The notes under the pieces: model-generated
Databases searched by the model: none
What the model saw: the letters and a program-made list of their open reading frames with translations, nothing else
Told to the model about the DNA's origin: nothing
Program-made: the position numbers and the translations under genes
Assembly: GCF_902459465.1 (NCBI RefSeq)
Contig: NC_047080.1
Location: 12,214,001 to 12,278,000 of the forward strand
From: Asterias rubens
Taxonomy: Eukaryota
Direction of reading: 5' to 3'
DNA length: 64,000 nucleotides
In this document: piece after piece, positions 1,983 to 56,316 of the stretch
How the letters are laid out: each line of letters starts with the position of its first letter
Numbering within the stretch: position 1 is the first letter of the stretch

Positions 1983-4520
1983 CAAATTTAATGCTCTTTT
2001 TTCAATACTCCAAATGGCGCATTTCCCTCACATCTGCATTATATTTTTTAAATTTCTCTTTCAAATAATTCTCTTCTTCAGATAGGTCTTCATAAAACAA
2101 ACTAGACCTGAATCCCCTACGATATATGATTTCCGCATCCAGTTTTCCCACCGTGTTAATACAATGAGACCATGGAGGAAGAAAACAGAGATACCATCAA
2201 AGTTTTGCATTCACGCTGAGTTCAGCCCACTCGAAGTACGCGACACCCGACATACTTCACGTATCATCATCGCCCAACAATTTTCATACAACCCCAAACC
2301 TTAACCAATGTGATGAAACCAACGAGAAAGCCCAGACCGAAGTGTCAACAGTATCAATTTCTATAGACACCACAGGTCATTTTCACTGTTTATGATTATG
2401 ATTTACAAGATGCAAGGGATTGCACAATATTTAAGGGGACAAGGTCGGGGGGGTTGCTGGCACCTAGCCACCATGCTCGTAGACAAGTGAACTCAACGAT
2501 ACAACACGAGGTCTCATTCAGAACTGAGCAGGATGTAATGCACTTTTAATAGGTCTATCAGTTTTTCACTCTCTAGAGAGAAGAAAAGGTTCTCGTTAAA
2601 GTGAGACTGAAGTTTGTTTTATTTTTACAAAATCACAATGACCTCAAAACGTATGCATTAATGAAAATATCTTCACAACTGGTGCATAATTTCCATCAAA
2701 TGCAAAAGTTGAATCTCGTGTCATTGTGAAACTTGAAACAGGTCACATGTTCAAATTGCTGCTGCTTCTTTCCCACATTTTTGCTCGACAAAATCAGTTT
2801 ATTGTTCTCTGCATCAGCTCTCGTTCACTCAGCAATTTAGCTGGTTATGTTCTCGCTAAGCATCATTTATTAGTGCTCAGCAATTTTGAGAGCTTCATGA
2901 ATTGGAGCTGCTTCAGCACAAATAGTCAGAGCATGGAGAGCTAATCACAACAAAATTATGGTAGGCAAGCAGTGCCTTGAAATTGAGCACCGAACTATCT
3001 ACACGAGACTGAAGACAGTAATTGGACTTTCCCCTTAGGCCATAATGAAATACCTCATTAAAGAGATTAAAGCAGCACTGAACGTAACACCTGTGTATTG
3101 ATAGGACTGTATACCGGTGTCTGGTACCAGACTACCAGCTGTTACTGTGACCTTATATAAGGACGCTGGTCCTAGCACCCATTCCCCTTATTATCCCTGT
3201 TATAATCTCAGACGAATTTACCAATCGAGACCAGCCATTTAGCCCATCGACATCACCATAATTAGTGTTTATTGGCGCAAACTGAAACCACCAATGTTGC
3301 CTGTCAGTTCAGTTAATCTGAAAACGTACAAGTTTCACTGCTGTCTTATTTGTCTTTTTTTCGGCGTGGACTCTGGTGTGGACCCAAACGGGAGCGAACT
3401 CCGATAGGGGAAGAATGTTACGTGTTATCCAGCCAAGCACAGCTTGCTTCTATGTCGCCCAGGGGCCAGGTCTCAGCAAGTCCGATGACATGCGCCTCAG
3501 AGTCTCAAAGATCTCCAGGAGAACAGAAGTCAAGGAAGCTTTTCGCCAGTAGGCCTGTACGTACTTTTTTTTATGACTCTAGATGGACCACGTCAACAGA
3601 AAACCAGGACCAGTAAAAGCAAGCCCCCACAATGGTGTTTTACGAGGGGTAGATGTCATGATGCAGTAAATCGCACTGCACAACATGGACTGTCTACCCT
3701 ACCGGCACACGACAAAGTCGACTCTGTGTACAGCCGAGTCGCAAGCCGCTCCCAGGGGCTTTATTTCCAGCAATTTTTGCTGATGCGAGCCTAAATTTCC
3801 CCACGAAAGCCCATGCCACATGCCTGCACTTTAGAAGAACAACGAAGAGGAAAAAACCCAAAGTAATTACATTATGTTGTATTACGGTGACTAAAAATAG
3901 CTGGTAGGGTGACTGTATGGGAGTTGGGCTGAAGGAAACCCTTAATTAGTGTCAATGACTCCAGACAATAGTGTTTTAACACTTGATAATGGGGTAAATC
4001 CCTTGGCACATCAAGACTAGTCCTCGCACTTGACAAATGCATCCTTGTAATTTGTATTACATATTGTGCACAGTTAACAAATATAATTATTTATACCCGT
4101 TAATTATGATTTGTGGTCTAACTTTGCACCAATCCAAACTGTGTTATTTCTAAACAATATCACTCACTATGAACATAGAGGAAGGACAGAAGGAAGATCA
4201 CTACACTAGAAACAATATAAGATAAAAAGGATAGATAGTCAAGTTTTCCTTTTTGGTAAGTTTCAAAACGAGAACTCCAAACATGCAATGAATTGATAGA
4301 CCATGGGGTAGACATAGAAAGTCTAGCTCAAGGGCCAGGTTTAACGATGTGACAGTAACTCGTAAATTAACCCGCTGACAACTCTCTGAACTTATCAACC
4401 ACAAACAACCACATCAACCAATGGAGGACAGAATAAAACCAAAACACACGCCACTCACAAACTAACAAAAACACAATCTACACGTGTGAGATAATGAACA
4501 GGAAAAGGTGTACACTTTAC

Positions 4521-5480
4521 CAACGTCCTCCCGTAGTCACTGATCTCATCCTGTCCAAAGCTCCCCCGCATACTATTTTTTGCCTTCACGGGAGATATAC
4601 CTCTTCTCGGACGTTCTTTCGGTGTTTTTATTATTTAAAAATATGTCCTGTACGTGGAGTTTTCATCGAGTCAGGGGCAATTTTTAGGCGCCAACTTCCA
4701 TAAAATCCCGTTCTCCAGTTCTGGCGGCAGCTTCGATTAAATTCCTCCCTTGTAGTTGAAGCGAGCATACGGCACCAGACTCAACCTCCACTGCGAATCA
4801 TCATAATTCCATGTTATGCAATTCATTTAGGGGGAGACCAAGTAAAAAACGAGGTGGGACACAAGCTCTATGGTGGATGGACACACGGCTACGTTGTCAC
4901 GCACTCCGTGTAGTAAGAGCAGTCACCTACAACTAAACGGCACAGTAGAGGAACTCAAATTGAAGGTCCCCTTTCTGCACGGTGGTCAACGTGGCTGTGG
5001 AGTGAGTGTTGTGAATTTAGAAACAGTTGCCTCTCAGTTGGGTTCTTCCTGACTGAGTCTGGCGAGCTTTTTACCCATCTCGCAACCCTTTATCGCCCGA
5101 TGACAATAGGTGAAGGTAACTAACTTGTGAGTTACTCCGAAGAGGTGTGCGCTTCGGAGTATGAAAATACTCGCTGAGTTGTTACTAAAGAGTTGTCTCT
5201 TTTTTGAAGCAGACGGGACAAGCTGCTGCGATGCAAGAGGGCATTCTCCACCACCTCAAGTCAGTCCTGCGCTCGGGCCACACGTTGCAGACACATGGCA
5301 CAGCAGTCGGTGTTTTTTCCTCTTTTTTAACTTTCCCTTTTTTTTTCTTCTTCTCGTACTCCTCTCCCTTCCTGTAGCGTCCCGTCACCAGCGAAGTCAG
5401 CAGTCGCGACGTGGGGGTCAAAGGTCATCAAGAGCGAGTGTCTCACACAACAAGCAAGCGGCAGACACAATCAACCAATC
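4521..5480 (-). other. Possible first (leader) exon and promoter of a minus-strand gene whose CDS is not in the window
   Basis: CpG-richer block, CCAAT box (aaccaatcag near 5473-5482) and a donor-like TTG|GTAAAG at 4520. No recognisable protein. Confidence 0.3.
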
Positions 5481-34000: not shown

Positions 34001-37000
34001 CTGAACACAGGTTGCCTTTCTAACCATATATGCATTTTATAACAAACGGTGACAAACGCTTTTCAAAGACCAACTCGTCCGATCCAAGGCAGCGTGTTCC
34101 GTTAACATTCTAACCATATTTCTCTGAAAGCATGCTCACTGTTTGTTTATGTTTTCCTGTTACCTGTTTGTCTTGTCTCCATGTTTGTAGTTTGTCTGCT
34201 TATAGGCTTTCTTCTACAAGCCTTGGCTTACATTAATATGAAAGCCTCACACTCTTCATATTAATTTGGTTACATAGATTAACTATTTTCCCTCCATTCT
34301 CTGTGCTTATTATTTTACTTATCTATGTAAATAAGTGTTGATGTTTAATTTTAGAAGTCAGAGTATTATAAAATAAATGCTGACTTTATGAATTGAATAA
34401 TAAAGGTCTGAAAAGAAGCAACTGATAAGTGTCGTTTATGTACCTGTGTAGCTCATGAAGTTCCTGTATGGAGTGTCAGTAAACTCAGCCTCACCGAAAC
34501 AGGCTGGAAGCTCACATGTTGTTGGGTCTCTGAAACAAGGAAACCAATAATAGGATCATGTCACACGAGGCAATTTACAGGCAACCTCCAAGAATACAAT
34601 TCATTCGCAGTTGAATGTTCACATTCTCTGTGAGTTCGTAATTAAGACATTGTTTGAAAAAGGCTCATGTGCTATCAAAGTGGTCCACTGCTGTAAGCAT
34701 GCACTGCAGTTTAACGCCTCCAAGTTTACTGTAAAAGTTGCATTTTGTGACAGGGCCCTCGGAACAGTGTAATCTACGTGTTTGAAGCCCGGTTCATACT
34801 TCCCGCGAATGCGATAGAAATTTTGACGTCACAAATTCGCAACGAAAAAATCGCATCAGTTGAAAATGTGCTCAACTCCTGTGAAACATTCGCAGCGAAA
34901 ACAGGGCTGTGACAAGAAGTATGCGGGCTAGAGTTTGATGACATACTTCGTATTTGACTATAACTGACCTACAGAACGCATTTTCAGGTGTGGGGTTGGT
35001 ATCAGCCACCAGGTCGCCCAGTACCCCGGACGCCCGATGCTCCCTGCAGTCATCAACGCACTCCATACCCTGGTGGACGTGCCAAAGCCCAAGGTTGTGA
35101 CCGAGTTCGTGCACGATCGTCTCGGCCGATGTTTCGGTGAAACTGCAGGCGTCTGCTTGGAGGACAGTTCCCCCTGGACAGAATGGACACATTTTGGAAC
35201 ATAATCAAATTCAATTCGACTCCTTTTTAAACCTGAAATTTCCCGTATTAATGATTTCACAAAGAGCTAAGATTGATCTTAGCTGCAAATCAATCGTAGT
35301 TGCTTAGTAAAGTATGATGTTACAGTACACATCGCTATGGTAATACTGACAATTTTGTCTTCCGATGGATGAACTTTATTGCTTTGTGAAATAGGCCCCT
35401 GGACTATGTTTAGTTTATAAATTGGGCCTTAAATTCCGTTAATTGCTTGACTCACCGAAGAGCCCATGGACATCCATCTCCCAAGGCATCGTAGCAATTC
35501 CTTCAATATCAGGATCAGAAAAGTTGACAAAGTAGACATTAAGATGGGAATCTGACTCCATTGCTACTGTGCCCTTCAGCTCTCCCAATGTAAGATAGTT
35601 CCTGTTAATATTTGATACAAAAATGACAACAAGAGGTTGATACAAGCATGAAATTTTGCACATAGAGTCACGAGTAAGATATTGTGCTTGTAAGACCATT
35701 GCAGACATAGAGTCACGAGTAAGATATTGTGCTTGTAAGACCATTGCAGACATAGAGTCACGAGTAAGATATTGTGCTTGTAAGACCATTGCAGACATAG
35801 AGTCACGAGTAAGATATTGTGCTTGTAAGACCATTGCAGACATAGAGTCACGAGTAAGATATTGTGCTTGTAAGACCATTGCAGACATAGAGTCACGAGT
35901 AAGATATTGTGCTTGTAAGACCATTGCAGACATAGAGTCACGAGTAAGATATTGTGCTTGTAAGACCATTGCAGACATAGAGTCACGAGTAAGATATTGT
36001 GCTTGTAAGACCATTGCAGACATAGAGTCACGAGTAAGATATTGTGCTTGTAAGACCATTGCAGACATAGAGTCACGAGTAAGATATTGTGCTTGTAAGA
36101 CCATTGCAGACATAGAGTCACGAGTAAGATATTGTGCTTGTAAGACCATTGCAGACATAGAGTCACGAGTAAGATATTGTGCTTGTAAGACCATTGCAGA
36201 CATAGAGTCACGAGTAAGATATTGTGCTTGTAAGACCATTGCAGACATAGAGTCACGAGTAAGATATTGTGCTTGTAAGACCATTGCAGACATAGAGTCA
36301 CGAGTAAGATATTGTGCTTGTAAGACCATTGCAGACATAGAGTCACGAGTAAGATATTGTGCTTGTAAGACCATTGCAGACATAGAGTCACGAGTAAGAT
36401 ATTGTGCTTGTAAGACCATTGCAGACATAGAGTCACGAGTAAGATATTGTGCTTGTAAGACCATTGCAGACATAGAGTCACGAGTAAGATATTGTGCTTG
36501 TAAGACCATTGCAGACATAGAGTCACGAGTAAGATATTGTGCTTGTAAGACCATTGCAGACATAGAGTCACGAGTAAGATATTGTGCTTGTAAGACCATT
36601 GCAGACATAGAGTCACGAGTAAGATATTGTGCTTGTAAGACCATTGCAGACATAGAGTCACGAGTAAGATATTGTGCTTGTAAGACCATTGCAGACATAG
36701 AGTCACGAGTAAGATATTGTGCTTGTAAGACCATTGCAGACATAGAGTCACGAGTAAGATATTGTGCTTGTAAGACCATTGCAGACATAGAGTCACGAGT
36801 AAGATATTGTGCTTGTAAGACCATTGCAGACATAGAGTCACGAGTAAGATATTGTGCTTGTAAGACCATTGCAGACATAGAGTCACGAGTAAGATATTGT
36901 GCTTGTAAGACCATTGCAGACATAGAGTCACGAGTAAGATATTGTGCTTGTAAGACCATTGCAGACATAGAGTCACGAGTAAGATATTGTGCTTGTAAGA

Positions 37001-40000
37001 CCATTGCAGACATAGAGTCACGAGTAAGATATTGTGCTTGTAAGACCATTGCAGACATAGAGTCACGAGTAAGATATTGTGCTTGTAAGACCATTGCAGA
37101 CATAGAGTCACGAGTAAGATATTGTGCTTGTAAGACCATTGCAGACATAGAGTCACGAGTAAGATATTGTGCTTGTAAGACCATTGCAGACATAGAGTCA
37201 CGAGTAAGATATTGTGCTTGTAAGACCATTGCAGACATAGAGTCACGAGTAAGATATTGTGCTTGTAAGACCATTGCAGACATAGAGTCACGAGTAAGAT
37301 ATTGTGCTTGTAAGACCATTGCAGACATAGAGTCACGAGTAAGATATTGTGCTTGTAAGACCATTGCAGACATAGAGTCACGAGTAAGATATTGTGCTTG
37401 TAAGACCATTGCAGATTTATCCTTATGAAGAAATATACCGGTCCTATAAAAAGCAATTTCAAATTTGCGATGATCTTATGGCCAAAATGTTCTTTCTGTG
37501 ACAGACCCCGAATGTACATGTATGTGTGCCATAACCAATGCTTCAAATGCACACTCCTTAATATCTGCCCCACTTAAAAGTATCATTACACAAGAGGTTC
37601 TGATATAAAGCCAGTGCAAGTAAAATTTCATAAAGATGTAAAACGTTCCTTTAAAAATACCTTAGTTAGTAGGTACTTTACCTATTGAGTGATCTTGGAT
37701 CGAAGCACGTCTTTGTGACGTCAGTGATAGTGGGGTCACAACAGTCACCACCATCATAATCTGTGTATGCTTTATTGCACTCGTTCTCACATACACCGTT
37801 TCCTAAAGAATCAAACAAAAACAATCGTTAGTTTATGTTTTATTCTATCTGTCTCACAATCTGTTCCTGCTGACATGGCTGGGACAGCTTCGTAAACAGC
37901 GGAGCGACTGGAACGGGAGACCAGTCGAGTGGAGAAACTTTGCCACTCGCGTATCGTGGTCTCCCGCTCCAGTCTCTTGGCGTCGCGGCTCTACGAAGCC
38001 GTCCAAGAAACAAAGGCCTTGAGAAAAGGCTATTGCTGCTGAACTTTCAGGGTTAAATATTTCCAAGCAATTCCTCCGTAAGGCCTTATAGTTTCATTTT
38101 TGGAAGCTGGTTAAATTTAGAGAGAAAGACGTACCTATCTGTCTGTCCACACAAGAATAATCATAACTACAGTCCCCTGCATCGTCACCAGTGACGTCAT
38201 ATCGACACTCAGGGTCACATGAGTTATCCCCAATTTGGTAGAGATTACATAGGGCGAGCACAACTCGATTTCTGAGGGAGCTATTCCTGACTACAAACTC
38301 CGTCAGTTCCCAGGAGATATTATGAGGTCTAAATGCCTCGTTGATGGTAGCGTGCTTCCGAAGTATAGTCGCCCGATCTACGGAGTGATTTGCCCCATCG
38401 TCTTCAGCCATAGTGATCGCTCGATACCGTATAACCTTACGGACCCGGAGTTCTGGCTGGTCGATGTAGCTCTTAGCAATGACCGGGCTATCGCAGACAG
38501 TCACCCCGCAGGATGGTTTCCTGGCGGTCAGACGTAGCAGCTCGCCGGGGATGTCAGACGGGATCGGTACGGGTTCGTTCTCAGCAGAGATCTTCCAGTT
38601 CACCCAGTCTGCCTCGAAGCCCTCTCGGACGACCAACCTGCTCCCTGCAATCGTCCAAGGGTCGCTCGGGTTGGAATAGCTTTCTCTGAGCTCTCGGTGG
38701 TTCAAGGTACCAGACCAGATGGCGATTTGATCGATGGCGCCTCGGAAGCCGTTTTCATCGTTGATGCTACCTCCGATGATTAGTTGCTTGCACTGGGTCA
38801 GGACTTCGCCAAACATCGGACCTGCAGTCCCCTTTCCGAAAGCCACCTATAAATAGTTAATAATTCACTATAAAATCAAACAAAAACAACAACAACAAAA
38901 TAAGCCAACAAGCAGAATAAACTGCAAGCAAGGAAAATGGTCAGAAAATTGAACAGAACAGGGCAATCGAGCAAAATCAACAAATTGGCCCAAGTATTTT
39001 AAGCAAACGAAGAAGAAAGCAAATATAGTGCCTTTTGAAGAAAAGGGAAAATTGTGATTCGTTCAGATGTAGGTACCATGACCACAGCGTTGTTTTACCT
39101 TTGCCCCGTTGACAAACAGAGTCAGCTCTCTGCCGTCGAAAGTCGCTGCCAGGTGGGTCCACGTCTCCGCTTCGTACCTACCGGTGGCTCGCACCATACT
39201 CGAGGCCCGAGACCGGTCGCTGGTGACGGAGAAGAAGTAGCGGGCATCGTGGTCTGGCTGATCCCTGTCTGTGTCTACACCCAGGGACCATGTCCAGTGA
39301 TTCCGGCTACCTCTACAAGTATCATGTAAGCCTGGAAAAGAAGCGGGAAATAGTGGTATTAAACACAGACAATAATGCATTGACAATTTACAACTTGGCC
39401 CTTTTGGAATCCACGGCTTCGAGTTCCAGTTTCTGCTCAAGCTAGCTTGGCCCCGTGGTTGTTTTGACAATGCGCGTGCTTTGCGTACGTTCTACTAATG
39501 GCTTCAGACCAGAGGACGAAGGCTGAAGCCGAATCCAAAGCCAAAGCCGTGGATTCGAAAAGGGCCATTGATCAAACAATTTCTACCGTATTGCTGATCA
39601 TACAATAGTGACAATATTATAGTATCAAACAAGTAATTAAAACAAAAACTATATCAATATAATAAACTAATAACCCGCAACAATCATTACACCCCCAAAA
39701 ACAGACTACCAATAAAACAGACAAAAACACTGTTCCACGTATGCAAATTAACAACTCAAACACTTATTATACGCACACGAAAGGGCAAATTAGAGACACA
39801 AACTGACTCAAAGATGCCTCGCAATGCCCTTACGATTTTGTTGTTCTTTGATGATCACACAAAACAACAACATTAGGATAGATGAACGAATTCATGCAAA
39901 CTATAGATGAGACACAAAACGCCAAATATAGCTCACAATGACCTTAAAAATAACAAACAAACCCAACAACAACAATAAACAAACAAGGATAAGTTTAACG

Positions 40001-43000: not shown

Positions 43001-45200
43001 CAACCATCCATACACATGTGATTGTGTGTGATGAGATCATTGATCTCCATTATACTGACAGTACACAGTACTTTCCCGAGTTCTGTGAAACATTACTCAG
43101 GTGGGATTCGAACCCACGAACTCTGCCATACAGGGCAGCTATCTTACCAACATAGGCCACTGAGATTACATGCATGGTAGCTAGAGGCAGTTCGATCACT
43201 ATAGACGACTATTTGTTGGTGTTATATCGAGGCAAGCTAACAACTCCAACACGGGGTTGACTAAATTTAGTTTATTTATTGATCAATATAATATTGATAA
43301 AACACGGCTCATTTCAATGCGTTAAAATTTATAGGTGGCTTGAACAGAAAATAGTGTCTAACATTAAATTGTATGTTTCTGCTAAGCAAAAATGAGTGGT
43401 ACGTGTGACAAGGCAATTTGGCTGATAACCGTGTTCTGTTAATTTTTTTTTTTTTTTTGGGGGGGCTTATCTTGTTCATACTCAAGCACTGCAGGGTCTA
43501 TGATATCTGCCCTCAAGTTCAAGAATAGTGCATGATTGAATGACCTTTTTGCCACGCAATGATGACGTCATCCTGAGGGGAAACAACCTTTACACTGAAT
43601 CAATCTTCTGTTTTATATTTAGAACCTGAAAGATCTTAAAAACAACTTTCAACCCCACCGAACACCAAGTTATGGCGCGACTTTACAAGAAAATAGAAAA
43701 GGGGCAGAATTGTTCTAACCACGTGAGCTTTGGAGCCGGTCTAGCGTAATCAGTGTTGTCTCTAAATACATGGAAATGAACACTTTCCAAATGTAGACAC
43801 AAACCGGAAATTCGAGATGCCATCACGTCTTGCAGTCAAGGCCAACGGGCCGACCATGAGACTTTCCCCTTTTACTACGAATTATCAAGGAATTAAAGCT
43901 TATTGGCACACTGCCGTAAAGACGGCTTGGATCAGGTCTCGTTCGACACCAAGTTTACAGCAGATGTTTACCAACAAGTTTCATTATGGGTGAACTTGAA
44001 CTAGGCCTACGTACAAAAAGGTGTCATCTTTAAAAACAAATAATATTTAAGCGCTAAGTATTACAGGTACTTTCTGCTTAGCTTAGGTGAACAGACTATC
44101 GAGTACAACANNNNNNNNNNNNNNNNNNNNNNNNNNNNNNNNNNNNNNNNNNNNNNNNNNNNNNNNNNNNNNNNNNNNNNNNNNNNNNNNNNNNNNNNNN
44201 NNNNNNNNNNNNNNNNNNNNNNNNNNNNNNNNNNNNNNNNNNNNNNNNNNNNNNNNNNNNNNNNNNNNNNNNNNNNNNNNNNNNNNNNNGTAAATGACGA
44301 TTGTTTTTCTCATCTTCCTTACCCTTGTAATTACATTATGCAAATATTATTATTACAATGGGGCAGAACAGCCGGTGAATGATCTGGTGAATGATCTGGT
44401 GAATGATCTGGCTGACCAATAGTAACTGATATTGTAGAGTTTTCGCCGAGGCCGGCCGGAGCGAAACCTTGTTCATGACAGCAAATCCCAAACTCAACAT
44501 TATTTTTTTTTCTAAACATTTTACAGAAGGGTACGCCAAAGCTTTAAAATAAGAACATCTCATTGGCACTGATCACACTGTTACGTCTATGAAAACTAAA
44601 GTCCTTTCCACACAAGTTTTACGACGAAAATGATACAGACGTTTTTAATGTTCATTGTTATTGACCAATATTTGTGTTGCTACTTTCCTAAAAATAAAAC
44701 AAGTATCAATATAGAACAAGAAAGGTGAACTCACCGATTATAACTGCCGGGCTCTTCTGACCTCCGGCGGGTTTTACCCAGAGGGCCACCGCAAATGCTT
44801 CCCTAGGGTAGCTGATCTCACCAGCAAGTCCGTCTGATGTAGTTGGGTTGTACCGCAGGGCATCGGAGCGAGCCGTAAAATACACTGCCGTGCCGGTAGA
44901 GACGTCCCGCTGTTCGCGGTGGCTGTCCGGTGTCCCGGAAACCACACTGTCCACATCCCGCAAAAAAGGGTTACTGTTGACCCGTCCAGTGGACGTGCCG
45001 CAGAACTTACGGCCGTCTTTCGCAGCGCTTTCGCCGTGTTGATGGCCTCGATCAATTGCCTCATATTTTAAATCTTCGTAAGTTACACTTCCTCCCCGTT
45101 TGTGAAGTCTAACCCCATGTGTTTGCCTTGCTAACGTAGGAACAAGAAAAACGCACAGAAGACATGTAGCAGAGAAGGCCGTTTTGAAAAAGCTCGCCAT
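25010..45200 (-). CDS. PAPPA: Pappalysin (PAPP-A family metzincin protease), about 1625 aa, 20 exons
   Basis: Exons 44735-45200, 39099-39331, 38135-38846, 37682-37802, 35456-35601, 34969-35173, 34444-34529, 32873-33211, 31571-32024, 31040-31168, 30843-30934, 30338-30603, 29710-29937, 29099-29374, 28023-28182, 27337-27541, 26784-26976, 25984-26146, 25628-25821, 25010-25219 (4878 nt, phases consistent). Signal peptide, REQR furin-type site, LamG domain, LNR1-2, HELGHNLGLWH zinc motif (35079-35111), NFMSY Met-turn, CGNG..ECDDGN repeat, five CCP modules, C-terminal LNR3. Probably co-orthologous to vertebrate PAPPA and PAPPA2. Confidence 0.95.
26296..26527 (-). mobile_element. tRNA-derived SINE with V-domain-like centre and a perfect 69-bp internal tandem duplication
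   Basis: B-box GGTTCAAATCC on the minus strand; duplication 26387-26455/26456-26524; gtgcgtgggttttcct...tttctccca segment. Relatives near 27650-27750, 32250-32385, 33420-33500 and 40235-40350. Confidence 0.7.
28670..29054 (-). mobile_element. Full-length TTAA-flanked MITE, family A (Kolobok-type)
   Basis: TTAA at 28666-69 and 29055-58; imperfect TIRs AGACACTGGACACTATTGGTA and AGGCAGTGGACACTATTGGTA. TTAA TSD with AG-starting termini fits Kolobok rather than piggyBac. No ORF. Confidence 0.9.
35661..37415. repeat. Minisatellite of 39 identical 45-bp units in PAPPA intron 4
   Basis: Unit catagagtcacgagtaagatattgtgcttgtaagaccattgcaga; 1755 bp = 39 x 45; no variant unit seen. Confidence 0.97.
40620..40835. 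repeat. G-rich degenerate tandem array of GGGGCGA(C/G)TT motifs
   Basis: About 12 copies spaced roughly 14-20 bp; resembles subterminal repeats of a DNA transposon. Confidence 0.7.
43068..43175 (-). mobile_element. tRNA-derived SINE head, same family as 53811-53911
   Basis: Reverse complement reads gggttcgaatcccacctgagtaat...cacagaactcgggaaagtac, matching the plus-strand copy at 53811. Confidence 0.6.
44111..44289. other. Assembly gap (179 N) in PAPPA intron 1
   Basis: Run of n characters. Confidence 1.
44374..44411. repeat. 12-bp tandem repeat, about 3 copies
   Basis: ggtgaatgatct repeated three times next to the gap. Confidence 0.85.
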
Positions 45201-47884
45201 CTTAAAAGATAAACTTCAAAGGTGTACCACCGCTCTTTTTAAAGGGTCGAAAACGAAGTGCGTGTCTCAAAACAGTGACTGTGTTTTTATAAACATCTCT
45301 CTTCAATTGACACAAATTGTGCACATCATTTTAATTTGCATAATCCAATTACCCGACCAATAGGTGGACAGGAATGCACGTGACTCAAGAAAGTAATGAG
45401 TCGAGATTATTCAATAGGGAAACCAGTTTGGATAAAATTGTGATAAGTGTGCGGTTCTTTAAGTATACGTATGATGGGTTGGTTATTGCTAAATTTTAAT
45501 TGCGTGCTAAGACTTTTTTTTTTTTTGGCAATCTTTCACACATAATAGGAAGCCAGGAAAAATATAAATATTATGTATATAAAAGAGGCCTATCACTTAG
45601 TCCGAATGTCTTTAAGTGAAATTCTGTGTTAATTTCCTTTGAACCCACACTCAAGAAATGTAGGCCAGTTACGTGGGCATTTAAACAACCGACACGGCGT
45701 GAACCAGCGATGACGTAAAAAAACGATGACCAGTTAGTATCCAGGGGGACGGGCTATCCGTTTTATAAAGTGAAATTAGCATTTTGAAATTATTTTACGT
45801 CAAATAGGGCCTGAACTCAATAGTGAAAAGCCTGCTGAGATTGCAAACCCAATCATTAAGCTTTTCAAATTTGGAATCGGCCCCATCTTCTTTAATACAA
45901 ATGGGTCAAACACGTCTTTCTGATAAGTGATCTTAAAAATATTATTGTACTGTGCCGTTTGGGGGTTGCATGTGCCACTTAGTTTAGCGTCTAAACCTAC
46001 ACACAAGGGGCAAGGTATAGATAACAGTTATTAATATTATATCTACATGTATATAGGAGTGAACAACCGACACAGCGAGTCCCTTCGTCGTCTGACGACG
46101 CAATGCGCCAGCACAGACACTGCTGGCGTGGTAAGCCCACCACATACCTAAACCCCGGTCATTCCAAAAAGCGTACATGTTGGTTGTTCCCAATAGACCT
46201 CATTCATTTGATTCAAAGAAATCGTAACATTCTTAAACTATTACTATTTTGCTATTACATGCATTATGTAATGCTGTGTTTGTGAAAGTATCAAAATAAT
46301 ATGAATTGAATTGAAGAAAAAAATATTGAGTTAAGAATATTTTGGTCTTCACACGAGTTTCCAATTGTGAACATAAAAATAATGATAGAGCTGTATAAGC
46401 TTTCATTGAAGCAACCACCCACACTGGTCAATTCATCAGCCCTGGAGGGAGCGAAACCATGGGGCTTTCAAGAGTGGACGTCCGGTACGTCCTCTTCAGC
46501 CCCGACGGGTCAAAGACCGGGATAAGCACTGGGATCCTTGACTATATCGAAGGTAAGAGTCTCCCCTGAGGGAGAACAGATCAACGGGGATAATCCCACT
46601 CTCGCAGACACTCCGTGGGATTAAACCATGCGTGGTTTTAATGATCGTATAGTGATCTGTAAAACAAATAAGGTTTGGTCGACGCGTTCAGACGTGTCCT
46701 ATGCAAGAAAAACATTCTTTTGTTGCCAATTTGCAGAATTTGTGCGGGTCCTTGCTCTATGGTTTAATGATAACATGGACATCAGTTGGGCACAGTTCAT
46801 AATTATTGTAAAACTAGAAACAGAGGCTAAGTCTCTCTGGATTTCTTTGTCGATTTGTTAAATTTATTTTACTTTCGTATCTCATTTCATTGGCTAAATT
46901 TTACTATCCAAACAATAGCCATGAAAGAACTATAAATTAGACTAAAGTTGTTGGAAGAAGCAGAATCGTGCGTACGTACAACTCATTGGTTGGAACCAAC
47001 TGTGGTTCTGAGAAGAAGTGGATGGTTCTTTTTGGTTCCTTTCAGAACCAGTTCTTGTTGGGTTCTTCTCAGAATCAACACTTCTCCCAAATAAGTTATA
47101 AAACAATACTTTTTCCCCCTAAACATTTCATATGCCATAAATCACGTCAAACTAAAGTATTTTAGGAGGCAGAATCGCATAAAACTCATAAAACCAACTT
47201 GGTCCGGGGAGTTTAAATATTGGCACGACTTGCCCAGTCTGTACTTGCGATGGAGTACACTGTGAACTTGAACTATTAACTGGGGTCAAGTCCCTCAAAC
47301 ATTATCCCCCATCAAGTGAGTAGTGATACTTAGGTCCCTTTGGTTTTTGTAGGCCCCCTACAGTTTCTGGAAAGGAAATGCAATTTTTGCATTTTCCCTA
47401 TGTGTTTAATAAAAACAAACCCGGCCATGTAGAGAATTGTCTTTAAAAGATGTTAACTTTGCACCGGTGATAAATCAACTTTACAAGTAGTAAATAAGTG
47501 ACCACGAGATTCGGGACGAGTGTTCCCGTAAACAAAAGGTAAAAGTTCCGTGACGTTGCATTATCTAATCAACTAACGAATAATGAGACGATAGAGGGCG
47601 GTATTAACATCTCATTCGTCAATTTCAATGTAGTCGTTCTCCATCGGAATTTCATACGCGTTCTCCCTTCGAAAAATAGATAAATAAACAAACAAATAAT
47701 TAATGATAAATGACTCAACGAATCAGAATCCTAAGTATTACTTGAGAGAAGAATCTTCGTATCACTAGACATGTAAATTAGGCCACTGACTGCGTGAACT
47801 TGTTGATTTTAAACCATGGAGCAATATTGCTCCACCTTTCCTTTGTTTTTAAATTCACAAAACTGGAAAAAAAGGAAAGGGTCC

Positions 47885-50800
47885 TCACTCATTTTGTTTC
47901 TTCTGCAACTTTTTGCTTTTTCTGCCTGCTGGGGGAGATGGCGGATCCCGAAGTCTTTGAATTTCAAGATCTTCTGAGCTAGAGGTCAAAATAATAAAGA
48001 GTTCATATTAAACTGTTTTAGTCATCTTCGGTTATTACATCAATTGCTTCATATTTGGTATATATCTTGTATATTTGGAGTGCATTCTTTCCAATCGTAA
48101 AATACTTTTGACCGGGCGCTTCCATCAGGAAATGTCTTGCATCATAATGTTTATGTATACAGGTTTAATTGCCTATATCTTGCATTAATGACGAAACGCA
48201 TAAACATAATAAAAATACTGTCAAAAATACGGCGAATTCGCAAAATAAATTGAAGATTTTTTAATTGTGGCGTTAATGTCGAAATTAGGCGGTTATAATC
48301 AATGTACGCATAATCAATAGAGGGCGCTGCTCAGAAGGAAATTACGGCTTGATTTCGAGTCTACACTAGTCGTCAATGTTTTCATATAATATTATAATTT
48401 TTTAGAAACTTACCCAGGTTGATTAAGCTCATCTGGATCAACGTAACCATTATCACTATCATCGCTGTCGTCAGCTTTCTTCTTAGATTTTCCCTTCTTC
48501 TCTTTTTTCTTCTTCTCTTTTTTCTCCTTCTTTGATTTTTCTTTTTTCCTGGAAGAAAAAAAATACGAAGGGGCAATAGTTAAACATTACTGTACCGTTC
48601 GTGTCCTACTGCGCTTACGGCCCCAGGGCCGCCCATGTCAGAATTGAGCATAATTCTACGTCCAGTGGGGCTTCATCCATTTCTTGATCAGTATGACAGG
48701 AATAATGCAAAATTACCCAGAAATGGGACAAAATGAGGCAGAATAAAACTTCAAGTTAAATTCTTTGGTGCCATATTTCTGTCGTTGAAATCTGGCTAAG
48801 ACCCCTGGGACCTGGATTTCGTAAAGCCCGTGGTCATAAACTTTACTAAGCACAGACAAATTGCTTGCAGAAACTGGTTACCAGCCAAAATTCCATAAAG
48901 TTTACATTGTTAAGTAACTGGTGCCCCAGCACTCATTTTGTTTAGCAAAGAAATTTGTAATGCGGGTAGTTTCAGAGTTTCCACTGCCGAGAACGCCAGC
49001 TCGGGCGACACTGCCTTAGACAGAAGGGTCAGGTTTGAGGAAATTATTTTACAATTATTATCACCGACAATCGGTTTGAGCATAATTATTTCTACTTATT
49101 ACTTTTCTTTAGATGATCCGTCGACCTCTTCATATATGTGTTCATCTTCATCGTCTTTCGCTTTGTCATGCCTTGGACTAAATCGTAAACAAAAGGTACC
49201 ATATCAATTTGACTGCATGTATTTAAATTACCATGGAGAAATCAAGAATTGGTCGTGAGAATTGAGGTAAACCCCTCCCGGATCCCCAGTACGAGCAATG
49301 ATTTAAAAATCGTGCTCAGTTTTGGCTAGCCTGAACATCTGACGTCACACATCACCTTTGACCTCGTATCACTACACACGGCGTTTGTGGTTCTAGAGAT
49401 TATCAGTTAAATCCAACGTACATGTGTATTATTATACGTGTCCACACCCTTGCGATTAAGGACAGGGACTTCTATGAGTTGGCTAATTTAGCCAGACAAC
49501 CCTCAAATTGAAGCAAGAAAGGGGGTGCGTGTTTTTTATTCCAACTATTCAATTCAATTAAGAAAATTAATAGCTCAACGCGAAAAACCTTTTCAATACA
49601 ATCGTAAATATATCGTGTCTACTTACGGAGTCTTGGGTGGGCGTGAACTACTCTTCGATGAATCTTTCCTGAAAAAAAAACAAGAAAGGAAACTAATTCT
49701 GTTTAAAAACCACAGGGACAGAACTTTAAAATGGCTGGGTCACGGGATCGATCCCAGTGTGGGTCTTTGGGACGGAAGGTGGCAGCAGACTTACCGGGTA
49801 AGTAGTCCATTTGTTTATGGTAATTCGCGCGTTCTCAGAACTACGTAAACACTGGAAAATATTACCTGGTAAGTCTGCTGCCACCTAGCGTAACTTTCTA
49901 AAGTCTCACAATCAATTTAATTGTTCATTATATAAAATAAATAATTTGCTTTGTCGAGCATCTCATAATATTATACAACACAATTGAGGCTCTACCGATA
50001 GGAAATCTTATGTTGTGTAGTACAAACCGATAATTGAAGACAGTGAATGAGAATTGGACCAGAGAACGTGATATCGATAGCACCCTCTAGGGTGTAGAGT
50101 ATTACTTACCCGAAAGCAAACCTCTGTATGAAAACAACCACTCCACCCGTTACCAGTGTAATAGTTATACCAATTACGATTCCGATTATAGGTGGCGATG
50201 ATCCGCCTATGTATTTTGAAGAGAAAAACAACAACACCTTAACAAACTTTATGCACACAATACATAATTTTAAGTTGAGCTCCCGCTCCTCTCCTTGGCT
50301 GATCTTCAGCAGCTGTGCATCATAGTTTTAAGATGGCGGCTTGGTGACGTCACTACATAACTTGGTGTATAGGGCTATGCATTTTTTCCAAGCAATGTTC
50401 CTCTCTCGAGTGGCGTATACGCAACTATTTAAACCAAACATATTATTGGTGGAGTACTTTTTTTGTTCTTTTATTATCTTTTCTGAAAAATTGTACTTAA
50501 TGAACACAGAAACCCTTCTACACAAAAGTGAATGACCACCACCAGGACTTTGGTGGCCATTCTGGATCTGGATCTTGATAGATATTCTGACATAGCTCAC
50601 ATTATTAGAACTAAACAAGAAGTGTGTTCGGTGTGGTTAATGGTCTTATTGTCCATGATGGATATGATGTCTGGTGGTGTGTTCCACTCTTTAACAACTG
50701 TTTAGGGTCAAGGATTATGAATGACTCTTTAGGAGTATTTGGAAGCATTGTATCATTGCATTGTGTAGTGTAAAGACACAAGTAATGTATAAAGTTTCCA

Positions 50801-51666
50801 TTATTGTAAAACTATTTTCTTAAGGACATAACTCTCACCTCTGCATGCAAGTTTAGCCTCTAGATAGTTGCGGCTCTTGCAGTCGATTCCAAGACATCGT
50901 TGCCATTCAGGTTCGTTCGACTCGCAATCTGACGGGTCTTCACAATGCTGATTAAGCGTCTTGAATCCAATCCCGCATGAGACATTGCACTCACTCCAAT
51001 CCTCGAATAAAACAGTATTGACGAGGCTATAATCACCCCCATCACCAAATAGCGAAGCAGGATCTAAACCACCATCCGCGTCTCGTTTCGATCTCACATT
51101 TTTCGGATGCTTCTTGGTTCCATTTCCTTCGTGTCTGGCACTCTCAAGGAGAGCAAGCCTTTCCGTCAGACTAGGTAGTTTCTTAGGGTTTAAATCGCCC
51201 GTGTCTAGCGGGATACCTCCGCTGGCTGATAGGCCCTCCAATATTTCATCGACTGTCATGCGTTGATCATGATGCAGTTCGGAATCTCGCGTTTCTTTTT
51301 CTACAAAATGAAAGAAAATAATAAGATAAAGCCTAAGGCCCATATAAACACAAAAACGTGCTCAGCAAAGAAAAACATTGTTTGGCAAAAACTGGGTAGG
51401 CCTTCCAGTCCTAATTCCATTAAGTTAACATTGTTGCAACTAGGCACTCAATTTTTGCTTGTCAACAAAATGAATGTTGTCAAGTAGAAGTTTCTGTTCA
51501 AAAGCTTTATGAAGTTGAGCCCTGCGGATCTTTGAAATTTTGAACTATGTTGTACAAAACTCGACCTACTTTTTCTGTTTGATGGGTTGCCGGATGCAAT
51601 TTCCATACAGCATACAATGGCAAGGAGAATAGTCCAAGTAAACGGGGGATGGCCGTCTGTCTTCAT
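47885..51666 (-). CDS. Uncharacterised single-pass type I membrane protein with prodomain, one thrombospondin type-1 repeat and Lys-rich tail, about 333 aa
   Basis: Exons 51570-51666, 50839-51300, 50110-50206, 49627-49668, 49103-49177, 48414-48548, 47885-47978; GT-AG and phase-consistent (1002 nt). Signal-peptide-like FTWTILLAIVCCMEIASG; RSKR furin site; TSP1 WSECNVSCGIG...QRCLGIDC; TM IIGIVIGITITLVTGGVVVFI; tail with RPPKTPPR, EDEHIYEEV, poly-K/E and NGYVDP. The last exon is less certain. Confidence 0.72.
49777..49886. mobile_element. 110-bp MITE with 25-bp TIRs in an intron of the orphan gene
   Basis: AGGTGGCAGCAGACTTACCGGGTAA versus the reverse complement of the right end: 1 mismatch. TSD not clear. 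Confidence 0.65.
50618..50765 (-). mobile_element. Decayed LINE (CR1/L2-like) ORF2 C-terminal remnant
   Basis: Reads ...SKYS...TVVKEWNTPPDII with stops, resembling the common FKYSFFPRTIxEWNxLPxxIV LINE motif. Confidence 0.5.
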
Positions 51667-53482
51667 TTGGTTCTCAGCTGACGAGATCACATTATTTGTA
51701 CATGTTTGTCCCCCAAAACGTAGATGAGTTTCTGCACTGGAAATTGTGTGGACATCAAACCTTCGTGCATCATTCACAAACCGCTTTTTTGTTGTCGAAA
51801 AAATTCGATATTTATGCGTGAAGCCTCTGCGTTGGACGCATTGCTGCGTGTGACGCGCTCAAACCGCAACATTTGTTGTATATTATTCATTTTATTGGGC
51901 TTACTTGCATCAAGTAAGGAACAAACAATTCTGAGATAAATGCAAAGAAAAAAGCTTAAAGATACAAGCAAGAAACAAAGTCGCGACTTGGAATATAGAT
52001 GTTATACAGTCCAGCTAATTATAAGAGTGAACACGAATGTGCCGTTTAATGCCCAAATATATAAATAACACTAAATATTATTGATTCTGCAATGAGGATT
52101 GTGTTTACAAGAGGGTGTGCGTCTGCAAAATACGCGCTAAGAGTTCAAAGGTGCACGCGTGACGGTTGGTACGCACCACGCGTGGTTGGTAGTGGTTGGT
52201 TGTTTTTTATTTTTTTTATTTGTTGGTTGAAGGTTGGCCGGCTCTGGAGTGGGCAGGTTGGTTGATGTTTTGTGAATATTCTTTAACCCGGGTATTAAAA
52301 CACGACTGCTTCAAATATTATCAGAAACAGTGCAACACAAATAAAAAGGTTTTTTTTTAAACCAGATACATCAGTTCAAACAACATGGCCATGTTTATTT
52401 ATACATAAAACACTTGTCAATAAACGTATTTACTTGTTTAATGTTTGTTTTAACTAGAGCTGGATGTTAACCTAAACGGTTTAAATCATTACATTGTATT
52501 TAACTCCTTGACTCGGTTTGTTTGGGTTTTGTTGTTTGTTTTTTTAAAAACTACTTTACCAGTGGTCTCAAGTTGAGGTTCTAGAATGTGTACTTAATAA
52601 TTATTATGATAACTAGTTGCATAATTGTATACATGTAAACCATGCAAAAAAGGCATAAATCACAATTTATTCCTCCTACTGTCTCAACATTTCCATTAAG
52701 TTTATCCACTGTGGTTTTGAATGATAATAAAACACCAGCCTGGAATATGATATCATGTAGTGAATGCATATACACAGTACAAAGTCAACCCTCCTACTGT
52801 CTGACCACTCATTATCGTCAACTGTGATTTTAAATGATGCACTCTGCCAGCACAATGAACATGCTTGTTGAAGGTTATTGAATGCAAAATGCGCTCTTTA
52901 TTACCATAAATAAAAAAAAAAGATTACCATCAAGTAAGACTTAACCATAAATGAACATTATTGTCTACTTTATTCAATAAGTTCGCTCTACTTTTTAAAG
53001 AATTAGCCATCCGTTTGTGAAACAACTTTGCCTCTCTTATTGTTTAAAAGTTAAACTGGTGTTTGAAGGAACACTGATGGCTCAGGGTTGTTTTCAAAAT
53101 GGACCAAGATTCTTCCCTAAAAGTAACACTCATATGGACATCACCAGGTAAGGACAATCCAATGACTCGTTACAGACTTATCTGCATACATTTTTACAAA
53201 TTGATTCAAGAAATCAACATTATTATTAGCAATGCCTGGGCGTTATGAGACGATTGTACAGAAATGAATGGTTTCTACAGGGTTAAGATGAAGAATGACG
53301 TCTACAAGATGAATGCCACTGATGATCAAGGCCAATGCCACACACCATGACATCCAAGCTGTTCCCTGGCAAGCTTACATTCGATAAATACTTCATTTTG
53401 ATTTTTATGCAGTTCTTGCCACATGTCAACTTATCGACATTGTGTTTATATTTACAGTAAATATAAAAAGAGAATGATGAAC

Positions 53483-56316
<2,834 letters not shown>

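Follow-up and report, generated by a model that had tools for sequence, protein, structure and literature searches.

What does a small transmembrane protein encoded on the minus strand between PAPPA and PTGES2 do in sea stars? The question arises from a window of 64,000 nt of the Asterias rubens genome (NC_047080.1, positions 12,214,001 to 12,278,000). An earlier examination of the letters, made without database searches and referred to here as the sequence-only reading, described this gene as an orphan furin-processed receptor with a single thrombospondin type 1 repeat (TSR). The gene is real, transcribed and already annotated as uncharacterized, and no characterised homologue has been found. 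As rebuilt from three-frame translation and splice sites it has eight exons, and its coding sequence (CDS) of 1053 nt encodes 350 residues. All parts of the architecture first described are present, namely a signal peptide, a prodomain of ~80 residues ending in RSKR, one TSR, a transmembrane (TM) helix and a charged tail. The favoured explanation, held tentatively and at slightly less than an even chance, is that this single-pass protein is an asteroid-restricted receptor or adaptor that would signal through phosphotyrosine.

The gene corresponds in a cluster look-up to A. rubens LOC117303373 (XP_033643438.1, P0061, 339 residues), named "uncharacterized protein", and tblastn of P0061 on the window gives 100% identity in most exons. 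Annotated orthologues occur in A. amurensis, Acanthaster planci (LOC110976384) and Patiria miniata (LOC119734306), every one under the same uninformative name. No literature naming the four LOC/XP identifiers was found. The order PTGES2, this gene, PAPPA is common to A. rubens, A. amurensis, Acanthaster planci (locus L001) and Patiria miniata (locus L002) and is shared across two orders. Over 16 kb the window and the A. amurensis locus are colinear, at ~95% identity. The position first proposed, between PAPPA and PTGES2, is confirmed. The description of the gene as an undescribed candidate holds for its orphan status but not for its annotation, given LOC117303373 and the annotated orthologues in three other sea stars.

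The seven minus-strand exons of the sequence-only reading have canonical GT..AG borders and, as stated there, consistent phases. Its CDS end at 47885, giving 333 residues, is incorrect. The TGA at 47885-47887 is part of the exon 7 donor, GA/GTGAGG, and tblastn of P0061 runs past the earlier stop into 47615-47665, where an eighth exon encodes ENAYEIPMENDYIEIDE. These 17 residues match the A. rubens protein at 100% identity, and in Acanthaster and Patiria the exon is kept as the final one. RNA depth drops from ~2300 to 22.6 at 47837-47882, directly below the exon 7 donor.

Splicing was assessed with contigs from public runs placed on 46900-52400. The joints between exons 1 and 2, 2 and 3, 4 and 5, and 6 and 7 are seen in X1 contigs, with three of the four also present in X4 contigs. 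The joint between exons 3 and 4 is visible as a loose end at 50105 with letters continuing into exon 4, while that between exons 5 and 6 falls in a skipped low-complexity repeat and is not directly seen. Co-splicing of the exons, on which the sequence-only reading depended, is upheld at the joints observed. In X1, an A. amurensis-type RNA set, k-mer depth is 2000-5000 over exons and 3-23 over introns. The same exon boundaries placed on the A. amurensis locus (L003) give exactly its annotated 356-residue RefSeq protein, P0063. A hexamer scan finds a sole AATAAA on the gene strand, at 46863-46868, and the 3' end is placed approximately.

The tail holds the features that point to phosphotyrosine signalling. 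It follows a TM helix with a hydropathy maximum at residues 193-213 and an AlphaFold2 (AF2) helix at 192-218, whose glycines are conserved across two orders. The tail consists of 137 residues, of which 35 are basic, 35 acidic and four tyrosine; AF2 predicts it at low confidence and it is probably disordered. Across the two orders it is only ~45% identical overall, yet all four Asterias tyrosines are invariant (YEEV, YVDP, YEIP, YIEI). Two of these are carried by exon 8, which the earlier model lacked. Conserved motifs comprise RPPxxxPR, an acidic run with EHxYEEvD, a basic cluster (KKxxKEKKxxxKK, present in all four species), GYvdPxxxNQP, SEeLEIxrLRdPPxPP and the C-terminal YEIPxxNdYlEId. Exons 4-7 are each phase 2-2 and a multiple of 3, and each holds about one motif; the homologue of exon 4 is left out in Patiria isoform X2.

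This layout recalls the vertebrate transmembrane adaptors. These proteins (TRAPs) are defined by several tyrosine-based motifs that are phosphorylated by Src/Syk kinases, and one of them, SIT, is a disulfide-linked dimer (PMC3177817). SIT, TRIM, LIME, SCIMP and the vaccinia A36 tail share an ectodomain of very small size, a single TM helix and, in the disordered tail, several tyrosine motifs of the SH2 type. The sea-star protein likewise has a short ectodomain, a single TM helix and several conserved tail tyrosine motifs. It differs in its folded TSR head and its lack of palmitoylation cysteines, and there is no sequence homology. The resemblance is best described as analogy, not homology. A language-model atlas places vaccinia A36R, SCIMP, the MUC1 tail and LIME1 as the nearest neighbours of the TM helix and tail with a score of 0.82, which is a lead only.

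A mechanism can be proposed on this basis. The small TSR would be displayed at the cell surface, where a glycan, a cis-receptor or a component of the matrix may serve as its ligand, and an unpaired ectodomain cysteine, C185, could make a disulfide-linked dimer. Upon engagement, Src- or Abl-type kinases would phosphorylate the four tail tyrosines, which could then recruit SH2 adaptors. By consensus, YEEV and YIEI presumably resemble Src/Nck-type sites, and YVDP and YEIP Crk/Abl-type YxxP sites. Partners with SH3 domains may bind the proline motifs alongside. Adhesion or ligand sensing would thereby be coupled to actin or PI3K signalling. The protein would work much like a SIT/TRIM/SCIMP-type adaptor or the vaccinia A36 tail, with the TSR as sensing head. 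In Asterias the head would be delivered by a cleavable signal peptide and a 79-residue prodomain, possibly removed at RSKR, while in the two valvatid models, those of Acanthaster and Patiria, the protein appears to begin right at the TSR.

The same tail motifs can be read as sorting signals, which gives the main rival to the phosphotyrosine reading, in itself unlikely. The protein would then be a trafficking or adhesion membrane protein without phosphotyrosine signalling, shuttling between the trans-Golgi network, endosomes and the surface while carrying or presenting cargo bound to its TSR. Two of the four tyrosines lie in YxxV or YxxI and could serve as YxxPhi signals for AP-2 (YEEV, YIEI). 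A Ser/Asp acidic cluster, DDSDDSD, lies ahead of Y293 and would be of the CK2 type found in furin-like cycling proteins, and the polybasic run is conserved. The transcript is also very abundant in one RNA set, which would suit a structural or secretory-pathway protein. However, YVDP and YEIP do not fit YxxPhi and are equally invariant. Sites for kinases, SH2 and SH3 domains more typically show acidic residues upstream of each tyrosine and conserved proline motifs such as those found here, and the atlas neighbours, for what such a lead is worth, are signalling adaptors.

The sensing head proposed in the phosphotyrosine reading is a TSR of unusual form. Its core contains WSEC, CNVSCGIG and six cysteines, with W134, the cysteines and the CGxG core in register with 47 TSRs, whose invariant columns are W, C, C, G, G and C. 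Pfam TSP_1 (PF00090) matches exon 2 with E 4e-4 and 20.9 bits against a gathering threshold of 21.6. Scores of 20.9 and 19.6 bits stand against this threshold, and all four family members are matched (best E 7.7e-5). The Trp ladder (WxxWxxW) and the RxR layer are absent. There is a single Trp, and at the near-invariant Arg column Asterias has Leu where the valvatids have Arg. In thrombospondin-type TSRs the C3-C4 pair forms a self-contained disulfide; the Patiria TSR lacks this pair. Judged by sequence, the repeat is degenerate. As it has no Trp ladder and, in Asterias, no central Arg, ligand binding of the classical type is doubtful.

Structure prediction points to the same fold. AF2 on a TSR alignment gives three strands (10-15, 23-33, 45-51) with a core predicted local distance difference test (pLDDT) of 67-83. 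The top 25 PDB matches of this model are all TSR domains, the best being F-spondin TSR4, BAI1 TSR3 and TSP-1 TSR2-3 (probability 1.00, TMt 0.6-0.76), with the TSRs of UNC5D and the apicomplexan adhesin TRAP also among the matches. A short LExxxAC helix carrying the extra cysteine C185 adjoins the membrane and is conserved across two orders. The CNVSCG stretch matches the O-fucosylation consensus. WSEC matches W-x-x-W/C, which is given as the C-mannosylation motif in PMC8433626.

The range of the protein was examined with searches of differing depth. Exon 2 was compared exhaustively with 1.84 billion representatives by phmmer, which gave 58 proteins. Beyond its own cluster and the Acanthaster orthologue, these were all multi-TSR proteins, matched almost always only over residues 98-150. 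The prodomain part of exon 2 yielded no relative beyond its own 50% cluster in this search. Three word-indexed protein searches brought up sea-star proteins only, those of A. rubens, A. amurensis, Acanthaster planci and Patiria miniata. These are weak, as one covered at most 8000 candidates, which we suspect to be mostly lysine-rich proteins, and one missed the known orthologue P0063. Within the sequences searched, the protein is found only in sea stars (Asteroidea). The sequence-only reading did not recognise the architecture as that of a named gene, which agrees with these results, in which exon 2 reaches other proteins only through its TSR and every source name is 'uncharacterized protein'. 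Its proposal of lineage specificity agrees in so far as only sea-star proteins were found, with the weakness of the searches attached. The roles in guidance, immunity or gamete recognition that it put forward are conjectural.

Alternatively, the protein could be an orthologue in a named family that has diverged too fast to be recognised. THSD1, THSD7A/B, EVA1/FAM176 and nematode MIG-21 were considered in this respect. The atlas gives THSD7A (0.84) and THSD1 (0.71) as feature neighbours, a weak Pfam FAM176 match occurs in two of the four members (best E 4.5e-4), and THSD1 and MIG-21 are also proteins with TSR, TM helix and tail (PMC12189160, PMC12445740). Each of these candidates meets an obstacle. 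For THSD1, Pfam gave no THSD1_N or THSD1_D3 match with exon 2 (E up to 1) or with whole proteins (E up to 0.1), and the atlas score is unsupported. THSD7A/B have many tandem TSRs and a short tail as opposed to one TSR and a 137-residue tail, and the atlas score lies within chance range. The match to EVA1/FAM176 (PF14851) reaches 16.8-20.5 bits, below the cut-off of 31.5, is lost without the TM helix and is absent in P0063 and P0036; this family was rejected because the Pfam match depends on the TM helix and composition. A hidden Markov model of the tail had no match among 55 retrieved TSR proteins, and MIG-21 is described as nematode-specific (PMC12445740). Decayed orthology is highly improbable.

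Several of these proteins remain useful for comparison. THSD1, a protein with links to focal adhesions, also combines a single TSR outside the cell and a single TM helix with an intracellular domain of signalling type (PMC12189160). It differs in its ~900 residues with THSD1_N and THSD1_D3 (atlas row); neither domain is detected in the sea-star protein, and the tails show no similarity. MIG-21 of C. elegans is likewise a small, lineage-restricted transmembrane protein with TSRs. It modulates guidance receptors and is described as nematode-specific (PMC12445740). MIG-21 carries two TSRs, and its tail is not known to have tyrosine motifs of the sea-star type. Apicomplexan TRAP/MIC2 adhesins also have a TSR adjoining the membrane followed by an acidic tail, and the TSR of TRAP appears among the PDB matches of the model. 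However, they come from an unrelated kingdom and have a vWA domain and a C-terminal Trp motif that the sea-star protein lacks, with the TSR fold as the sole shared element.

In Asterias, residues 1-26 are signal-peptide-like, with a hydrophobic core and A-S-G preceding the cut; this assignment and that of the TM helix were made from hydropathy, the -3/-1 rule and AF2 helices. Residues 27-105 (79 residues) are hydrophilic, Cys-free and end in R102-S-K-R105, and residues 106-133 form a linker. R102-S-K-R105 is the sole R-x-K/R-R in the protein and is lumenal, downstream of the signal peptide. The estimated chance expectation of one such motif in a basic 160-residue ectodomain is ~5%. Among the orthologues only that of the congener A. 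amurensis, 95% identical, retains the motif; the valvatid models lack the whole region. As the signal peptide, prodomain and RSKR are seen only in Asterias and have no valvatid counterpart, furin processing is not a feature of the family. The sequence-only reading called the receptor 'furin-processed', which goes beyond a motif of this kind. For Asterias itself furin processing is a reasonable guess from the sequence that could fall either way.

The Acanthaster and Patiria models begin at a Met 6-7 residues ahead of the TSR Trp. No conserved upstream exon for a signal peptide or prodomain was found at their loci by tblastn with the Asterias N-terminus, tblastx or blastn. Either these elements belong to forcipulatids, or a first exon of low conservation is missing from the valvatid models. 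The latter would mean that the valvatid gene models are truncated and that all orthologues have a signal peptide and furin-removed prodomain, which is somewhat unlikely. A disulfide-rich TSR without a signal peptide would be unusual, a short and poorly conserved signal-peptide exon could escape the blastn/tblastx screen, and Acanthaster has an AG acceptor 3 nt ahead of the Met. Truncation fits less well with the start of both models at the same-position Met, with the absence of an AG adjoining it in Patiria, and with Acanthaster-Patiria conservation that begins exactly at this Met. Signal-less N-out insertion would offer an alternative, as it would be consistent with an N-terminal tail of ~60 residues ahead of a TM helix whose C-side is strongly basic. 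It may even be that sea stars evolved their own phosphotyrosine transmembrane adaptor and deliver its TSR head differently, Forcipulatida with a cleavable signal peptide and furin-removed prodomain, Valvatida by signal-less N-out insertion of a disulfide-bonded TSR. This proposal is speculative and unlikely. If true, the two delivery routes would represent a natural switch in membrane-insertion mode within one orthologous receptor.

A signal activated by proteolysis would also make use of the N-terminal site. In this scheme, furin cleavage at RSKR, shedding and intramembrane cleavage would send the lysine-rich tail to the nucleus, with KKEKK as nuclear localisation signal. RSKR is present in Asterias, and KKxxKEKKxxxKK is conserved throughout the four species. 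The valvatid models lack both RSKR and prodomain, however, the long K/E repeat is a length-variable Asterias expansion, and the tail bears no resemblance to a DNA- or chromatin-binding module (Pfam on the tail without the TM helix gave nothing). Such a role is very unlikely, and both nuclear entry and hidden orthology are less likely than a trafficking role.

Comparison of A. rubens with A. amurensis gives dS 0.04, dN 0.02 and an overall omega of 0.47; the tail alone has 0.27, the prodomain 0.48. These ratios rest on 25 substitutions, too few to separate domains, and purifying selection is suggested but weakly so.

Several points count against a phosphotyrosine receptor or adaptor. The TSR has no Trp ladder and, in Asterias, no central Arg. 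The AF2 model of the TSR was built from an alignment made of TSRs, so that the fold is partly imposed, and AF2 on the whole protein, with a 4-sequence alignment, has a mean pLDDT of 42 and is uninformative. The sea-star range comes from one exhaustive exon 2 search and three word-indexed searches, of which one missed P0063. Atlas scores lie within the range reached by shuffled proteins. In the tail there are no juxtamembrane cysteines for palmitoylation, unlike in LAT, PAG, LIME and SCIMP, and YxxV and YxxI can also be read as AP-2 sorting signals. Specificities for SH2 and SH3 domains are assumed from short motifs via consensus sites.

If the phosphotyrosine reading is true, sea stars would have an invertebrate-deuterostome counterpart to the vertebrate transmembrane adaptors that makes use of a different extracellular module. 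The protein would also give compact access to tyrosine-kinase signalling, adhesion or migration in these animals, of which Patiria is a genetically workable model. The difference between the Asterias and valvatid N-termini could be a small, clean case of an evolving mode of entry into the secretory pathway. At present the protein adds to the uncharacterised membrane proteins that are restricted to one lineage and carry a common domain, and public annotation already includes it. Its features are located in Table 1.

Table 1. Positions in the window of the parts of the gene, listed from its 5' end, and of its two neighbours.
Feature	Position	Strand	Basis
5' untranslated region, minimum extent	51667..51828	(-)	RNA contigs continue past exon 1 to 51734 (X1) and 51828 (X4)
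Exon 1: ATG at 51666, signal-peptide-like residues 1-26, prodomain start; donor GTAGGT	51570..51666	(-)	Joint 51570/51300 in X1 contig
Exon 2: prodomain, RSKR, linker, TSR, juxtamembrane cysteine	50839..51300	(-)	Both flanking joints seen in RNA contigs
R102-S-K-R105 codons, candidate proprotein-convertase site	51083..51094	(-)	Read from sequence; kept in A. amurensis; no valvatid counterpart
TSR core W134-C173: WSEC, CNVSCGIG, six cysteines	50879..50998	(-)	Pfam TSP_1, 47-TSR alignment, AF2
C185 codon, seventh, unpaired ectodomain cysteine	50843..50845	(-)	Invariant in family alignments; outside six-Cys TSR pattern
Exon 3: transmembrane helix, residues about 192-218	50110..50206	(-)	Hydropathy and AF2 helix; joint to exon 2 (50839/50206) seen in X1, X4
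Exon 4, 42 nt, phase 2-2: start of RPPxxxPR motif	49627..49668	(-)	Exon rebuild
Exon 5, 75 nt, phase 2-2: acidic run and HIY248EEVD	49103..49177	(-)	Joint 49627/49177 in X1, X4; motif invariant in four species
Exon 6, 135 nt, phase 2-2: polybasic K/E repeat, acidic Ser cluster, GY293VDPxxxNQP	48414..48548	(-)	Exon rebuild and alignment
Exon 7, 90 nt, phase 2-2: SEDLEIQRLRDPPSPP; end GA/GTGAGG	47889..47978	(-)	Joint 48414/47978 in X1, X4
Exon 8: ENAY337EIPMENDY345IEIDE, stop 47612-47614, acceptor ttttcgaag	47612..47666	(-)	tblastn with P0061, 100% over 17 residues
3' untranslated region, approximate	46845..47611	(-)	X1 RNA contigs, exon-like depth over 46900-47606
PTGES2 exon (Glutaredoxin/GST_N)	55696-56250	(-)	
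PAPPA start	near 45200		

The coding exons vary in length between species. In exon 4, at window position 49651, the species of X1 and X3 has an in-frame 18-nt insertion that corresponds to TEKSEK, the six extra residues of A. amurensis P0063. The purine repeat coding for K/E in exon 6 (48460-48540) is 33 nt longer in the window than in RefSeq A. rubens P0061, which lengthens the K-rich part by 11 residues, and the long form also occurs in A. amurensis. The difference is a coding-microsatellite length polymorphism or an assembly difference. The valvatid gene models have an additional YVxM motif within a valvatid-specific conserved N(S/R)YV(I/T)MTS (L001 11274-11381, L002 13363-13479), where Asterias has the expanded lysine-rich repeat instead. 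The YxxM is presumably a PI3K-p85-type site by consensus.

Two introns contain repeated elements. Intron 3 has an inverted repeat of 30 nt, 90% complementary with a 60-nt spacer, at 49772-49891. DNA-run depth over this stretch rises to 10^4-10^5, and it is therefore a very high-copy interspersed element, probably resembling a miniature inverted-repeat transposable element (MITE) or a short interspersed nuclear element (SINE). A second high-copy element lies in intron 5 at about 48740-48923.

Elsewhere in the window, a run of 179 N occupies 44111-44289, directly downstream of PAPPA exon 1. The PAPPA gene region also contains a minisatellite at 35660-37415 with 39 copies of a 45-bp unit, at 100% matches and with no indels. 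It yields long spurious open reading frames on both strands and odd Pfam matches without a matched stretch. Its homogeneity is unusual and could reflect a very recent expansion or an assembly artefact.

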